7,340 bases of DNA from Chlorokybus atmophyticus (Eukaryota; Plantae; Mesostigma and Chlorokybus algae). The notes below the pieces were generated by a model, which was not told where the DNA came from, made no database searches, and saw only the letters and a list, made by a program, of their open reading frames with translations. Of the stretch, positions 1 to 7,340 are shown one piece after another. A program made the translations under genes and the position numbers. Every line of letters begins with the position of its first letter. Position 1 is the stretch's first letter. The stretch is from assembly GCA_009103225.1 (NCBI GenBank), contig RHPI01002262.1, positions 666,962 through 674,301 of the forward strand. Direction: 5' to 3'.

Positions 1-562
1 ACTCCGCAGCTTCTCTTTTGCGACTTGTGAGCTCCCGCAAGTAGAAATAGGCTGTGCATTTGCGAGATTGGTCATGCTGTTCATGTGCATGACACTGGAG
101 GTTGTGCATGAGGGTGTGCATGTGGTATTGACAATGTATGTCAAGTGCAAGATACTTGAGGCTGTGCATGTGCAAGATAAAAGAACCCTAGCATGTGGCA
201 TTGACAGTGCATCGTAACCCACCTTGGTTATGCCAGTCTTGTTTGGTCCTTTCAATCATGTCGCCGTGGTCGCAGCTGCTGGTGGGTCGGATTTTCTTAG
301 GAGCAGTATTGTGGTGTGCCTTTGCCCACTCGGAGGGGGAGCCCTGTAAGATATCGCCCGAGTCACTGTTGTCATTGGATGTGCCCTTGGTAGTCTTGGT
401 GGGGTTTGACACCGAGGACACCCCTTCGGCACCCTGCCCGCCCTGTGCGAACATGGAATTCATCCCCGGACCTCGACCAAAATGCCCACTACGCCCCTGG
501 TAGCGCCGCCAACGATCCTCCAAACGCCACATACCCTCGGCATCACGCCCCTGTAAGGGCAT
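1..562 (-). CDS. Unknown spliced gene X, copy 1 (exon 562-223, intron 222-52, exon 51-<1); 3' part outside the window
   Basis: ORF from ATG 562 (or ATG 463, MNSM) with coding-like codon use. Donor CAAG|GTGGGT at 222 and acceptor TGCACAG|CC at 52 give a phase-1 join that restores the frame (HNQ-A-YFYLRELTSRKREAAE). The start codon is uncertain. Confidence 0.7.
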
Positions 563-598
563 AGCCTGGCGGAGCTATCAATGGTGTTTTCATGCGCA
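1..598. repeat. Repeat unit X, copy 1 (left part outside the window), direct repeat of copy 2
   Basis: 1-55 is identical to 5161-5215. 262-598 matches 5441-5776 with 9 substitutions and one 1-bp indel by manual alignment (~97%). It ends in the same TTTCATGCGCA. Confidence 0.97.
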
Positions 599-639
599 GG
601 GGGACTGACATTGCCAGAGTTGTCAATGGTACAAACTGC

Positions 640-681
640 CATTGTACAAAGGTACCATTTCAATGGTACCTTTGTACAATG
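640..681. repeat. Perfect inverted repeat, 20-bp arms, 2-nt loop
   Basis: CATTGTACAAAGGTACCATT-TC-AATGGTACCTTTGTACAATG. Confidence 0.98.
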
Positions 682-732
682 CCTATACCTTTTGGCAAAG
701 GCATCTTCGTACCATTGAAACGGTTCAATCAG

Positions 733-1245
733 NNNNNNNNNNNNNNNNNNNNNNNNNNNNNNNNNNNNNNNNNNNNNNNNNNNNNNNNNNNNNNNNNNNN
801 NNNNNNNNNNNNNNNNNNNNNNNNNNNNNNNNNNNNNNNNNNNNNNNNNNNNNNNNNNNNNNNNNNNNNNNNNNNNNNNNNNNNNNNNNNNNNNNNNNNN
901 NNNNNNNNNNNNNNNNNNNNNNNNNNNNNNNNNNNNNNNNNNNNNNNNNNNNNNNNNNNNNNNNNNNNNNNNNNNNNNNNNNNNNNNNNNNNNNNNNNNN
1001 NNNNNNNNNNNNNNNNNNNNNNNNNNNNNNNNNNNNNNNNNNNNNNNNNNNNNNNNNNNNNNNNNNNNNNNNNNNNNNNNNNNNNNNNNNNNNNNNNNNN
1101 NNNNNNNNNNNNNNNNNNNNNNNNNNNNNNNNNNNNNNNNNNNNNNNNNNNNNNNNNNNNNNNNNNNNNNNNNNNNNNNNNNNNNNNNNNNNNNNNNNNN
1201 NNNNNNNNNNNNNNNNNNNNNNNNNNNNNNNNNNNNNNNNNNNNN
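733..1245. other. Assembly gap (513 N)
   Basis: Run of N; the length is only an estimate. Confidence 1.
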
Positions 1246-1496
1246 CATGTAACAGCACCACCGTCGCCGGTGATGCCCCTTCAATCCTCTACCCCAACAC
1301 CCACACCGCCTATGACAAGCCTTTCAACGGCGTGGCCGCCACTGAGCAGAGAACTGAAAGTCCCCACATCAGATTGATGTGACCTTTTATATCAAGAGTA
1401 TATCAACTATATGCCTCTCGATAATTAACTCACAACTAGACATCGACCCTACAGATAGGGTAGTTAGGAAATCTAGCGTGAGCCAATCACAGCTCA

Positions 1497-1554
1497 GATA
1501 AGGTACCTATCGATAAGGTACCTATCCAAAGATACCTATCGTAAGGTACCTAAC
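1497..1554. repeat. Tandem 15-mer GATAAGGTACCTATC x2 plus two degenerate copies
   Basis: 1497-1511 = 1512-1526 exactly; GATACCTATC at 1531 and GTAAGGTACCTAAC at 1541. Confidence 0.95.
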
Positions 1555-1977
1555 GAGATAGTGATCACATTATATCAAATGTGACACTAAATAGGCTTGA
1601 ATAAGCGGTTCTACACCCATTGGGACTTATTTAAGCTATGATAAAGCATCATAGCCTTTAATAAGCGAGGAACCGTAGAAAAGAGGTATAAATAAGCATA
1701 TTTGAATACTTATTCATACAAAATGTGTTATTTAGGTAGCAATAATACCCCTATTATTATTGCTCCCGTTACAGTGAAGTTATATTACAGTGCAATAAAG
1801 CCTTATTCGAAGCTGCGCAATTCAATAAGATTCGGGCCTACCATGGGCTGTGATAACAAAAGCTTTGTTTTGTCACCTTATGACCTTGAGGCGTTATTAT
1901 AAGCAAACGTATATAGCAATGCTATACCCAGTATCTACTAGCCTTGCCACATAAACATATCACGTTTGCTTATAATA

Positions 1978-2050
1978 GCAAACTTTACACGGTGACTGAC
2001 GAGACTGAGGGACTGTTGGATGCCTGACCCTATCTGACCCTAACGGACCC
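1978..2050 (+). repeat. Duplicated module, copy A, followed by a 10-bp-period GACCC array
   Basis: GCAAACTTTACACGGTGACTGAC (1978-2000) matches 4209-4231 at 22/23. GACTGAGGGACTG (2003-2015) = 4236-4248. GACCC occurs at 2026, 2036 and 2046. Confidence 0.9.
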
Positions 2051-2458
2051 AACGGCTTGGGCCACAAAGGGACCAATCAACTGCCGGTGCGTATTGTGGA
2101 CAATAAGCAATTGCCGATCGCCAATCGTACAGTACAGTGGACTGTTGCCTACCGGTGATGACGTGACATCAACATATTTTTACGGCCGACCGCCGGTCAT
2201 ACTGCTTCCGGCGACCTACCTGTAATAGCAAGTAAGTGTATATTCAGGCCCCTAATGGCGGCGGTCGATATTGGTGAGTCGGAGTTGACCCGCGGCCGGC
2301 CGTCGGCTGTACATAAGCCGCGACGACGACTTATGAACCTACATTGGCAAGCAAGTGACCACTCAATCTTAACTAAGTCTCTGCTAAGAGGGACGAGCGA
2401 TGGCGGCGAGTACCTGTCAGTCCGCTGAGTTATACTCGGCACACTTAATGGAACAATA

Positions 2459-2561
2459 GTACCATTGCGATGGTACAACAGTCCCATCAAAGTATCATAT
2501 ACGGTACTCATCATTCAATGGTACATCGGTGCTGTCGTACCATTTAGTGGTACGACTGTAC
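2459..2561. repeat. GTAC cluster with small hairpins
   Basis: Seven GTAC in 103 bp (2459, 2473, 2504, 2521, 2537, 2550, 2558). Inverted pairs: GTACCAT-tgcg-ATGGTAC (2459-2476) and GTCGTACCA-tttag-TGGTACGAC (2534-2556). Confidence 0.9.
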
Positions 2562-2641
2562 CATTGAACTTGAAGGCGTTGAGCGTTTGAAATGCAGCAG
2601 CGTTTCAAACGCTGAACGGTTTCATTTACAAGGACAGGAGT

Positions 2642-2712
2642 GCGGCGGCGGCAACGGCGGCGGCGGCGACGGCGGCGGTAGCGGCGGCGGTGGTGGCGGC
2701 GGCGGCGGCGGC
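2642..2712 (+). repeat. Imperfect (GGC)n microsatellite
   Basis: ~70 bp of GGC units with a few AAC/GAC/GGT/AGC interruptions. Confidence 0.95.
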
Positions 2713-2997
2713 ACGGTTGGTGAGTTTGTGTATATGCGTGTACACAGAGTAGTTGAGTTACATGTGCATGATGGCGTTATGTCAAGTGCAACAGCGCAAC
2801 CCGCCCTTCTTATAGGCCAGGCCAGGCCAAGCCAGGCGGCGGCATGGTAGGTGAGTTTCTGTGTATGTGTGTGTATGATGCCTTTGTGTTGACGCCCTTC
2901 TTGCCGACCAGGCCAGAGGAGGAGGAGCGGCGGCGCAGGCGCGGAGGAGTGGAAAGTGGAGGAGCGGCGGCTGAGTATAAGGGTAGAGTATATAGGG

Positions 2998-3018
2998 TAG
3001 TAGTAGTAGTAGTAGTAG
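2998..3018 (+). repeat. (TAG)7 microsatellite
   Basis: Seven perfect TAG units. Confidence 0.97.
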
Positions 3019-3180
3019 CTCGATGTAGTTTACATTGTAGCGTAGCAACATGTTACAATGTTTATTGTTATTATATTATATTTGTGAATCACTTAAGTTA
3101 TTATATAATATTATATATTTGGGACTAGCCGTCTCTCACAGTTGACGACAATCACATGCAGTGCCTGCTCGTGACTGAAT

Positions 3181-3359
3181 GGTACCGATAGGTATTGGGG
3201 ACAGTGACGTCAGGTACCTTGAAGGTACCATAAAGTACCTCAAAGGTACCTGATAGTTGGGTACCTTCGAGGTATAGTCGCCGGTACCGAACTGTTGGGT
3301 ACCGGTTAGTTAGGTCAAGTCCCCTTTGCTTGACTGATGGGTATTTAACAGGTACCTGT
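3181..3359. repeat. GGTACC cluster
   Basis: Eight GGTACC (3181, 3213, 3224, 3245, 3260, 3283, 3298, 3351) plus AGTACC at 3234. Includes GGTACCTT-g-AAGGTACC (3213-3229) and the palindrome ACAGGTACCTGT (3348-3359). Confidence 0.93.
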
Positions 3360-3663
3360 CAGTCTAAGTTAGTCCCTTTATTAAAACGGCCGCCGACTGA
3401 TGGTGACGGCCGTTATACTCAGGTCTCTGTATCGAGATTACAGGTGGACTAAGGTACGACAGTCTAAATGAGTATCCTCATGTGCACGGCCGTTGCCAAT
3501 ACTTCATCGGCCGGCAGGGGAAACAATTTGCGACGTTGTTGAAATGCGTTTTGCACAATGATGTATATTGCATGTTTTGAAGTTGTAACTTATACTACTT
3601 GAAGACAACAAATTGATTGGTGTTCATCGCGGAGTTGACGATGATGCCAATGGTAAAGAAAGT

Positions 3664-3690
3664 CATTGAAAGCATTGAATGCTTTCAATG
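3664..3690. repeat. Perfect inverted repeat, 13-bp arms, 1-nt centre
   Basis: CATTGAAAGCATT-G-AATGCTTTCAATG. Confidence 0.97.
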
Positions 3691-3804
3691 GTTTCAATCA
3701 AGTTAGTAATGAACAATGTTCAAACTCAATTAAACTAATTCTGCAGTCAAGTAACACGAGAGTGAAGCATTGCATGAAGCGTTTACAAACAAGTGATTCA
3801 CTCC

Positions 3805-4145
3805 GCGTGTGTGCGAGCGAGTGCGCGCGTTACATATACATGAGTGCGTGTTCACAAGCGCATTTTGTCGGCGCATGCCACACATGCATGCACGCCATCA
3901 TCACGCGCAATGGCATCTACCACTACATTGTTACATTCATGACCGCCATTCTATGTGCCTCAATTACCCCGAGCATATGCATGCACAACCCCCAACAACT
4001 ATTCATTGTTAAGCGGATGCTGTAACTTTTCCAAAATGCGTGTGCATGCGTGCGAATGCGTGTGAGAGCATGGTTGTGTGCAACAAATGCAACACGATGA
4101 TTGTGATGTTGTGCTTGTGTGTTGCTTGTGTGCTTGCATTGTGTT
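3805..4145. other. Low-complexity TG/CA/GC alternating purine-pyrimidine-rich tract
   Basis: Runs such as GCGTGTGTGCG, GTGCGCGCGT, CACACATGCATGCACGC and ATGCGTGTGCATGCGTGCG. Confidence 0.75.
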
Positions 4146-4208
4146 CAGTAACACAATACCATAACACAGCGACTGACGTGCCGGTACATGCGCCAATACG
4201 CGTACGTC

Positions 4209-4290
4209 GCAAATTTTACACGGTGACTGACTAAGGACTGAGGGACTGACTGGTGCCTGAGCCTGCCTGAGACTGCCTGTTGCTGCCTGA
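4209..4290 (+). repeat. Duplicated module, copy B, followed by a 10-bp-period TGCCTG array
   Basis: Matches 1978-2027. TGCCTG occurs at 4254, 4264, 4274 and 4284. Confidence 0.9.
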
Positions 4291-4767
4291 AATACTACTT
4301 TGGGACTGTTGGGTTTGCCGTTGGCTTAAGTGGACTGGCGCAGACGGCCGCGGGCCGAAAGTGGTTGTCAGTGGCACTAACCGGCCAGAAGTTGTCAACC
4401 AGTTACCCTTTGGTCGATGTGCACAGACGGCCGTTAGCCGGTAGTTACGGACAGCTGACAGCGATAGCCGGCAGTTTCTTTGCCGTTACACTGCTGTTAA
4501 TATGTGACCCTTGCCGTTTGACAAAAGTTGGCAATTCTTGCCGTAAGCCAACACTAACATGCCATGCAGCTTGTACAAACCTTGGACTGATTGTTTGGTC
4601 TTGCACCTAAAAGCCCACAATATATACAATGTACGGGCAGTGGTGAGAGTATGTCCACGTACAACTGAGCAGCCGACTTGCGCATGAAACTACCCTACAA
4701 CATTGAGTCTAGCTGTTGAACTCATGCGCAGCTTGTCAACCCGTGGTGCCTGCCTCAGAACTCCTCC

Positions 4768-5740
4768 TCAAACCCCCTCCTCCTGTTCCTCCTCCGACGA
4801 GTCTTCTGCTTCAACGCCGGAGTCATCTTCATCCGCTGCCTCGCTCGCTGACAGTACAGCGGCTACTTCGTCCTTCAGCTTGAATGTCAGCGCCTCGCCG
4901 TGCACGCGCATGCGCTTGATGGTCGCTTTGAGAGTGACCACCTGCATTTGGTAATGCTGTAAGAGTGGCGTGCTGCCATAGGCCTAGCCCATCAGCATAC
5001 ACACGCTTACCTCGTCCTCCGCTTTGTTGCACTCCGCCAGACAGACAGTCAGCCTGCCGCGCTGCTCTTGGTTCACTCTGACCAACATGGCAATCTGCAA
5101 GCATACTGCTTAATTACCGCTGGAAACATTAAACTAGGTCATAGATTACCCGTTCGTTTGACTCCGCAGCTTCTCTTTTGCGACTTGTGAGCTCCCGCAA
5201 GTAGAAATAGGCTGTNCAAAGCAACTTTCGTCTCCTGCAGGTGGTGCACCTGCCTGGCGGTGATGATGATATCATCAACATACACGAGCAGCCAGACCTT
5301 GTTGTCTGCATGGATGAAGAGCCCAGGGTCTGCAGAGGATGCGGTGAAGCCAAGTGCCTCCAGCTCCTTGGTGAGCTTGATGTGCCACATACGCGGTGCC
5401 TGTCGCAGCCCGTACAGTGCCTTGATCAGCTTGCACGCTNCGCCGTGGTCGCAGCTGCTGGTGGGTCGGATTTTCTTAGAGGCAGTATTGTGGTGTGCCT
5501 TTGCCCACTCGGAGGGGGAGCCCTGTAAGATATCGCCCGAGTCACTGTTGTCATTGTATTTGCCCTTGGTAGTCTTGGTGGGGTTTGACACCGAGGACAC
5601 CCCTCCGGCACCCTGCCCGTCCTGTGCAAACATGGAATTCATCCCGGACCTCGACCACAATGCCCACTACGCCCCTGGTAGCGCCGCCAACGATCCTCCA
5701 AACGCCACATACCCTCGGCATCACGCCCCTGTAAGGGCAT
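4768..5740 (-). pseudogene. Unknown spliced gene X, copy 2 (exons 5740-~5441 [rest lost in the N-bounded segment], 5211-5150, 5094-5011, 4956-4768); 1-bp frameshift near 5643
   Basis: Intron 5149-5095 (55 nt, GTAATC...TTGCAG) and intron 5010-4957 (54 nt, GTAAGC...TTACAG; alternative in-frame acceptor at 4942) are both phase 0, and each removes an in-frame stop. Spliced product: YFYLRELTSRKREAAESNER-IAMLVRVNQEQRGRLTVCLAECNKAEDE-HYQMQVVTLKATIKRMRVHGEALTFKLKDEVAAVLSASEAADEDDSGVEAEDSSEEEQEEGV*, with TGA at 4770-4768. CCCC>CCC versus copy 1 breaks the frame upstream of ATG 5642, so it is intact only if that ATG is the start. Confidence 0.7.
5217..5439 (-). mobile_element. Isolated copia reverse transcriptase (RVT_2-type) fragment flanked on both sides by single N
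   Basis: Translates as ACKLIKALYGLRQAPRMW...ADPGLF...LLVYVDDIII, containing the KALYGLRQAPR and YVDD motifs of copia RT. N at 5216 and at 5440 mark its exact boundaries. Its placement is probably an assembly artefact. Confidence 0.93.
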
Positions 5741-5776
5741 AGCTTGGCGGAGCTATCAATGGTGTTTTCATGCGCA

Positions 5777-7340
5777 ATCTCGTCNTCCATAGCACGCTGC
5801 CATTGCTCCGCATCTGGTGCTAACAATGCCTCCTCGTAGGTGCTTGGCTCCTCATTCTGCACACTGGCGACGTGTGCCTTGTGTAGGAAGTCAGGTGCCT
5901 TTCTCTCCCTCACCGGGTATCTCCGAGCGGCGTGCTCCTGCTGGAGGTGCGACTACTTGTCTGCTACAGTGGAGTCCTGCTCACCCTTATCGTCGATGAT
6001 GGCCTTGCCTGTAGCCTCCACTGTTTCAGGATGCTCCGGCTGTGCTTCATCTTCAGGAAAGAAGCCTGCTTCTGGTTGTGATAATCCCTCGTGGAAAACC
6101 ACCTCTCTGCTCACGATGATCTTCTGAGTGTCCTCGAGCAAGATCCTGTAAGCCTTGGAACCCGGTTCATAGCCAACGAAGATGCCCTTCTTGCTGACCG
6201 GCTCCAGCTTGTGCCTGAGCTGTTTAGGCACTAGTGCATATGCCGTGCATCCAAACACACGCATACCACTCACATCTGGTGTGGCTCCATAGAAGTGCTC
6301 CCACGGAGTCTTCTGCTCTGAGCTCACCGAAGACCTGTTGCGGATGTAGTTGGCAGTGAGTACCGCCTCCTTCCACATACTGTCTTCCATCTTTGTGTCG
6401 TTGAGCATGGCTCGAACACGCTCCAAGAGTGTCCTGTTGAGGCGTTCAGCTGCTCCATTCTGCTGCGGGGTGTAGGGTGCCGTTGTCTCGTGGCGTATGC
6501 CCTCGCTGGCGAAGAACTCCTTCAACTCCTTGTTGATGTACTCCCCGCCTCGATCACTCCTCATTGCCTTCATCTTGTTGCCAGACTGCGTCTCCAACAA
6601 GGCCACGACTGTGCGCACAGCTCCAGCAACTTCTGACTTGAGCGTCAATGGAAAGATGATGGACAGCTTGCTGTAGTCGTCGAGGAACGTAGCAAAGTAC
6701 CTGGCCCCTCCCTTCGCCACAATGCGCATAGGGCCACAAACATCCATGTGCACAAGCTCGCAAGGATGCTGACTGCTAGAAGAGGATGATGGGAATGGCA
6801 TAGCATGCTGCTTTGCAACCAGGCATGGTTCACAAAGTGCACCTGATGCTGTCTTGAGTTCTTCTGTGCTGAGATGGATGCCCTTGACCATCTTCTCAGC
6901 GACAAGGCGAGTGAGGTTGACGTAGCTGAGATGCCCGAACCTCCGTTGCCACAATGTTGGCGACTCCTTGTCCTTCACCACCATGGCTTCAATGTCTCTG
7001 TCTTGAGGCTGCTCCACGTGGTAGAGCCCTCCCGGATCAGCGATTCCAACCATGTGCACGACCCCATCAAGGATGACTGTGCAGCCACCCTTCCGAAATA
7101 GGATCTCCGCGCCTAAGCGCTCCGCAACCCTCACAGAGAATAGACTCGCAATAGCCTTAGGAACATGCAGGACGTTGCGTAACAACACCTCGCGTAGTGT
7201 GTTACCAACCTTGCACTGGAGTCGCACGTTGCCAACTCCCTCAGCCACCAGTACTTCGCCACCGAAGCCCGCCACCTTGATTGTGGACGTCAGCTTCCTG
7301 TAGCCCTCCATCACCTCCTTGTTTGGTGTGAGATGACGAT
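5777..7340 (-). mobile_element. Ty1/copia LTR retrotransposon, internal pol region (truncated, decayed; continues beyond the right edge)
   Basis: The minus-strand frame runs from the window edge (RHLTPNKEVMEGY, protease tail) through GxGxVRL/VLHVP (Pol beta-barrel), LWQRRFGHL...CEPC (GAG-pre-integrase Zn finger), VHMDVCGP / FLDDYS / RSDRGGEY / QQNGAAERLNRTL (DDE integrase) and VFGCTAY...GIFVGYEPGSKAYRI (SH3) to EEPSTYEEAL...WQRAMxDEI (start of RT). Integrase-before-RT order is diagnostic of copia. No LTR, PBS or PPT in the window. Confidence 0.97.
5777..7340 (-). pseudogene. pol: copia pol polyprotein, interrupted by an in-frame TAG at 5953-5955 and truncated at 5777
   Basis: ORFs 5953..7314 and 5551..5913 are in the same frame (starts differ by 1401 = 467 codons). 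Reading through the TAG gives STVADK*SHLQQEHAARRYPVRERKAPDFL...EEPSTYEEAL, a typical IN-RT linker. RT homology stops after DEI(A). Confidence 0.9.

Follow-up and report, generated by a model that had tools for sequence, protein, structure and literature searches.

A possible non-autonomous repeat-flanked unit nested in a Ty1/copia element of Chlorokybus atmophyticus, with a likely scaffolding artefact in one of its repeats

The window analysed here is the whole stretch of 7,340 nucleotides at positions 666,962 to 674,301 (forward strand) of contig RHPI01002262.1 in the Chlorokybus atmophyticus genome assembly GCA_009103225.1. It carries two direct copies of a repeat unit, here termed X, on either side of a non-coding core that is interrupted by an assembly gap; the right copy (X_right) abuts the pol gene of a Ty1/copia retrotransposon on the minus strand. 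A previous sequence-only reading had taken the whole arrangement, X-core-X, as a candidate novel mobile element inserted into the copia element. The features of the window are as follows, in window coordinates (RT, reverse transcriptase; ORF, open reading frame; N, a base not called in the assembly).

1 to 598, plus strand: X_left, the partial left copy of X; the window begins inside it, and its blocks 1-58 and 261-598 match X_right
588 to 598, minus strand: terminal inverted-repeat arm TGCGCATGAAA, closing the right end of X_left
599 to 732, no strand assigned: hairpin cassette adjoining X_left, with a perfect 20+20 palindrome at 640-681 (z -8.2) and four AATGGTAC motifs; it stops at the gap
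733 to 1245, no strand assigned: assembly gap of 513 N, the scaffold join that carries the link from X_left to the core
1246 to 4678, no strand assigned: sequenced core, non-coding, with clusters of the motifs AATGGTAC, AGGTACC and ACGGCCG, palindromes and a (GGC)n run
4679 to 5776, plus strand: X_right (1098 bp in the assembly), bounded by TG...CA ends that carry a terminal inverted repeat of 11 bp
5217 to 5439, minus strand: copia RT piece inside X_right (RVT_2 positions 114-185, YVDD), with a single N at 5216 and at 5440
5441 to 5784, plus strand: right part of X_right and 8 bp of copia (D-E-I on the minus strand), spanning the X/copia junction 5776/5777, with an N at 5785
5777 to 7340, minus strand: Ty1/copia pol (Pol_BBD, gag_pre-integrs, rve, SH3_retrovirus, linker, WQRAMxDEI), continuing past the window end
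229 to 562, minus strand: exon 1 of the proposed X ORF (left copy), with ATG at 562 and donor GT at 228-227
4768 to 5211, minus strand: exons 2-4 of the proposed X ORF (5211-5150, 5094-5011, and 4941-4768 including the stop)

Comparison of the two X copies showed that positions 1-58 and 5161-5218 form a direct repeat differing by one N, and that 261-598 and 5440-5776 are identical in 327 of 338 alignment columns, with about ten differences including one 1-bp indel. The match there is 97-98%, over a comparable length of 395 bp (58 + 337) of the ~1.1-kb unit; the comparison is limited to this length because the window begins inside X_left. The middle blocks of the copies are unrelated. The left one (59-260, 202 nt) is rich in GTGCATG and has no counterpart in X_right, where 5219-5439 (221 nt) stands instead. 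The direct repeats reported by the sequence-only reading are therefore real, but its two ~97% identical copies of ~1.1 kb reduce to 58 + 337 bp of shared sequence around unrelated middles.

X_right begins with TGCGCATGAAA and closes with the reverse complement TTTCATGCGCA, which gives TG...CA ends and an 11-bp inverted repeat. The sequence TGCGCATGAAA was found at 4679-4689 (plus strand), 5766-5776 (minus) and 588-598 (minus), that is, three matches where 0.18 are expected, a number not attained in any shuffle. These ends had been described before, and they were recovered here with X_right starting one base earlier than had been implied. At its right end X stops abruptly against two differing flanks, a hairpin-rich stretch at 598/599 and the copia pol at 5776/5777, and both junctions lie within unbroken sequence; X is therefore a discrete ~1.1-kb repeat unit with defined ends, present in at least two copies in the genome. 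In agreement with the earlier description, no target-site duplication (TSD) was found around X_right alone for k = 2-10. When X alone was compared with DNA transposons bounded by terminal inverted repeats (TIRs), the 11-bp inverted repeat was present and X_right had no flanking TSD.

The Pfam search identified the domains Pol_BBD, gag_pre-integrs, rve and SH3_retrovirus at 5953-7338 on the minus strand. This pol has the organization of Ty1/copia, with the integrase ahead of the RT and an RVT_2-type RT piece at 5219-5438. It shares the Ty1/copia domain order, in which RVT_2 follows the four domains above; whereas here the element is broken at the RT start and is present as a fragment within the window. 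The copia pol is 45-56% identical to thousands of copia polyproteins. Only one in-frame stop (5950-5952, in the linker between integrase and RT) was found across about 520 codons, and this lone stop in an otherwise open pol suggests that the copia element is young. The final readable copia motif before X is WQRAMxDEI, which in the relatives lies at the front boundary of the RT domain: the 8 bp past X encode D-E-I and continue the frame of the upstream WQRAM, at the place where the relatives have W..AM..E[ILM]. The copia element is broken at the start of the RT domain, right after AMxDEI. The claim that pol abuts the right end of X in mid-RT was correct as to a sharp junction at 5776/5777, but the break lies at the RT start.

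A simple insertion of X_right, with the copia RT resuming at 4678, was considered and rejected, although excising X precisely leaves a frame that looks RT-like by eye. Pfam gave no RT match in the left flank of X_right. A tblastn search with 47 full-length relatives matched below 5777 only at 5205-5450 and in the GGC low-complexity sequence, and Smith-Waterman alignment of the flank against the RT fronts of 14 relatives gave scores inside the shuffle range. Because the left flank is not copia and there is no TSD, either the paired X copies and the core were inserted as a single unit, or X_right is the product of a rearrangement. A nested insertion is reasonable, and insertion of the paired X-core-X into copia is the simplest model, since X ends sharply at the copia RT, X_right is flanked on its left by sequence other than copia, and the single copy has no TSD. 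To this extent the proposal of one element in copia stands; however, the right copy is likely chimeric as written, and the link between the copies depends on the gap.

The middle block of X_right is foreign to X. Translated on the minus strand, 5219-5438 corresponds to RVT_2 positions 114-185 (E 7e-17) and includes the YVDD motif, and 44 full-length copia relatives align there by tblastn. The window contains three single Ns (5216, 5440 and 5785), all within 570 bp: the first two lie on the edges of the RT block, which are homology breaks, and the third lies 9 bp past the X end. The RT block is oriented like the adjacent copia pol. Between the block and the pol break are 337 nt, filled with unrelated X sequence; in 31 relatives, the corresponding motifs are separated by 117 residues (range 115-119), or 351 nt (345-357), so that the spacing here is 14 nt short of native. 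The two swapped blocks, left and right, are also similar in size. By estimate, a random biological event would give such orientation and spacing roughly 2% of the time.

The Chlorokybus assembly is based solely on Illumina reads and was made with SOAPdenovo2 (k=85) followed by GapCloser and Pilon (PMC7027972); GapCloser has been called greedy, with filling favoured above accuracy (PMC9575681). We infer that the RT block is likely a scaffolding artefact of this short-read assembly, which would make X_right as written chimeric. Two paths might have been interleaved, namely the X path at the locus and an intact-copia path for which other family members supplied supporting read pairs. The scaffolder would then have slotted a 223-bp RT contig, derived from intact elements of the same copia family, between two X contigs, where this contig probably took the place of a low-complexity block like the left 59-260.

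For the locus as a whole, we tentatively favour, at somewhat less than an even chance, a non-autonomous unit similar to long terminal repeat (LTR) elements, of the kind known as large retrotransposon derivatives (LARDs), nested in copia, with its right repeat corrupted by the scaffolding artefact. The two direct X copies, together with the about 4.1 kb of non-coding, motif-rich DNA that they flank, would be one unit of about 6.3 kb. This unit would have been inserted into the RT-coding region of the young Ty1/copia element, just after AMxDEI, so that the rest of the copia element is expected left of the window. Its mobility would have followed an LTR-type pathway, with proteins borrowed from another element.

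Several results weigh against this LARD-like interpretation. The X pair is linked only across the 513-N gap, which separates X_left from the rest of the core and is crossed by no reading frame; the sole support for the scaffold join within the window is the AATGGTAC clusters on both sides of it. The comparable X sequence is only 395 bp long, the outer end of X_left would lie about 481 bp before position 1, and any outer TSD would likewise lie beyond the window. A search for further copies of X in a metagenome collection, with an exact 22-mer of the X end, gave 0 matches. The hallmarks of LTR retrotransposons at the inner edges of the repeats are also missing. For the primer binding site (PBS), no TGG occurs within 20 nt of either repeat in either orientation, and the complementarity to the repeat that a self-priming (Tf1-type) PBS would involve is never above 8 nt. 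No polypurine tract (PPT) was found beside either repeat, the purine fraction of the last 20 nt being 0.55 (plus orientation) and 0.35 (minus orientation). The absence of PBS and PPT weighs here because a pair still about 97% alike should have retained both. Their absence in canonical form near either repeat had been noted from the letters alone, and it was confirmed with both orientations checked. The window contains neither a tRNA gene nor a noteworthy Rfam match.

The absent PBS and PPT count against LTR membership, and they do not establish a new class. Two defining features of LTR retrotransposons are missing, while the overall architecture resembles LARDs and terminal-repeat retrotransposons in miniature (TRIMs). 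Both groups are non-autonomous LTR retrotransposons, summarised from Kalendar et al. 2004 and Witte et al. 2001 in PMC6696364, which draws them with PBS and PPT. X-core-X is alike in its two putative direct terminal repeats, TG...CA ends, short inverted repeat, non-coding interior, length above 4 kb and nesting in a retroelement. It differs in having no PBS or PPT at either repeat and in being a single instance; its interior is composed of GTAC-type motif clusters and palindromes, not of a conserved folded RNA domain.

Two other groups may be compared with the locus. In compound (composite) transposons, paired TIR elements bring about macrotransposition. The locus is similar in that two copies of a TIR-bearing unit flank unrelated DNA and their outer arms form an inverted pair; whereas no transposase family can be assigned, the single X has no TSD, and the ends of X are LTR-like (TG...CA). 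The DIRS and PAT-like tyrosine-recombinase retroelements are common in green algae, and TOC1 of Chlamydomonas is a non-autonomous example. Their terminal repeats do not follow the classical PBS/PPT logic, and a TSD is not expected. The terminal repeats of X-core-X likewise have no PBS or PPT; however, the window shows no recombinase, RT, split direct repeats or internal complementary region of this kind. The unit may be a non-autonomous derivative of DIRS or PAT.

A four-exon ORF can be drawn within X on the minus strand (562-229, 5211-5150, 5094-5011 and 4941-4768), with GT-AG borders, exons in phase and 217 codons. This ORF exists only as a composite, with exon 1 from the left copy and exons 2-4 from the right copy, and the X_right equivalent of exon 1 carries a 1-bp deletion that shifts the frame. 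Eight substitutions between the copies fall in the ORF: one at codon position 1, five at position 2 and two at position 3, which together with the frameshift is the pattern of neutral decay. Pfam gave no family for exon 1 or exon 4, a word-based protein search (which covers proteins of 61-194 aa only) gave no relatives of exon 1, and an atlas search with the X ORF returned no usable match, with low recognition. The X "gene" is an orphan spliced ORF, unsupported as a working gene, and the idea that each terminal repeat is filled by a 3-intron gene was not upheld.

Pfam analysis of the ORFs on both strands of the sequenced core gave no protein domains (a further 513 bp is N), and no transposase or recombinase was found there; the sequence-only reading had likewise seen no RT, transposase or recombinase in it. 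The Rfam and tRNA searches of the core gave no match of note, and the idea of a known RNA was dropped. The core is rich in short motifs, counted in both orientations. The rare 8-mer AATGGTAC occurs 9 times against 0.2 expected (four at 625-716, four at 2459-2565 and one at 3178-3185), AGGTACC occurs 16 times against 0.66 expected, and ACGGCCG occurs 10 times against 0.6 expected, at 2182-4434 and often as the palindrome ACGGCCGT. Strong DNA palindromes are also present, with z-scores of -3.6 to -9.6. The core is "structured" at the DNA level, and nothing in it indicates a functional RNA; the earlier term "structured non-coding core" is apt for its palindromes and its lack of domains, but not in the sense of RNA.

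Other explanations were weighed against these data. If the RT piece is real, the right copy would be a biological mosaic of copia and X, produced by template switching or gene conversion. The deposited sequence does read so, and the piece is an intact frame of 73 codons; nevertheless such a mosaic is very doubtful, as both junctions of the piece are Ns, the piece is out of frame with pol (337 nt), and it keeps the copia orientation and a near-native spacing to pol across unrelated DNA of matching length, the coincidence put above at about 2% by chance. Independent insertion is a better candidate, though still somewhat unlikely: X would be a stand-alone 1.1-kb repeat (TIR-type or solo LTR), inserted twice about 4 kb apart, with a rearrangement in addition. 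The TSD of X_right would then have been lost through ectopic recombination or a deletion joining a copia-borne copy to a core-side copy, and the core would be merely intervening DNA with GTAC-cassette repeats. X does have its own 11-bp terminal inverted repeat, and the core, without domains and made of short motif clusters and palindromes, is not tied to X by a PBS or PPT. However, two nearby copies in the same orientation and an extra rearrangement are needed, no TSD of 2-10 bp flanks X_right, and a deletion stopping exactly at the element terminus is unlikely unless the copies recombined.

The assembly might also be at fault on a larger scale, so that no X-core-X exists in the genome: the X_left contig and the contig of core plus X_right would have been misjoined, and/or X_right would merge several loci. 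This is distinctly unlikely. The 513-N gap does begin only 134 bp past X_left, the three single Ns fall within 570 bp at X_right with two of them on homology breaks, the RT contig is demonstrably out of place, and the assembly is Illumina-only, from SOAPdenovo2 and GapCloser (PMC7027972). On the other side, both contigs are long and include unique sequence, and scaffolders tend to position such contigs correctly; the rare AATGGTAC clusters occur on both sides of the gap (9 against 0.2 expected), and the ten copy differences show two distinct X sequences. A further proposal is highly improbable, namely that X-core-X is a new mobile unit of ~6.3 kb that moves without tRNA-primed reverse transcription and carries the spliced X ORF as functional cargo. 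It would be either a compound transposon acting through the outer arms of its inverted repeats or a unit mobilised by a recombinase whose gene lies elsewhere. The absence of PBS and PPT despite about 97% repeat identity, the 11-bp inverted repeat formed by the outer arms of the direct X pair, and the four proposed exons in phase with GT-AG borders are consistent with this proposal. But the sequenced core has no transposase or recombinase, and the ORF has no relatives or family, with 5 of its 8 substitutions at codon position 2 and a frameshift in the right copy. Nothing shows a new kind of element, and this is a single instance in a draft assembly with shown errors.

The main value of the locus is as a caution: a copia RT contig was apparently slotted into an unrelated repeat near its native distance from the adjacent pol. 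Such an interleaved contig can pass for both an exotic mosaic and a "hidden gene", and odd repeat structures in the same genome deserve a check for single-N joins before they are interpreted. If the paired unit is real and recurrent, it would be an unclassified non-autonomous element without PBS and PPT in an early-branching streptophyte alga, whose repeat content is little known; this would be of modest interest for transposon specialists. As a separate observation, the Ns at 5216, 5440 and 5785 behave as unresolved contig joins, and other single-N sites may mark interleaved repeats.

Some minor features of the core were also observed. A (GGC)n run at 2642-2712 is followed by two copies of a segment of ~38 bp (2704-2741 and 2835-2872) that ends in GGTGAGTTT; it has the look of an exon-intron border, duplicated, in a glycine-rich ORF, with no family match. 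A direct repeat of ~60 bp (1978-2037 and 4209-4270; 82% identical, 2231 bp apart) holds CACGGTGACTGAC, and a version of CACGGTGACTGAC with 2 mismatches overlaps the end of X_left at 597-609. The two repeats contain CACGGTG and were considered as ends of the Transib/CMC type; this was rejected, because their similarity begins ~10 bp upstream of CACGGTG and there is no inverted partner. The motifs AATGGTAC and GGTACC, which share a GTAC core, form clusters in both orientations with strong hairpins at 599-732, 1497-1556, 2459-2565 and 3178-3357. Such clusters are reminiscent of subterminal repeat arrays in DNA transposons or of binding sites grouped together.

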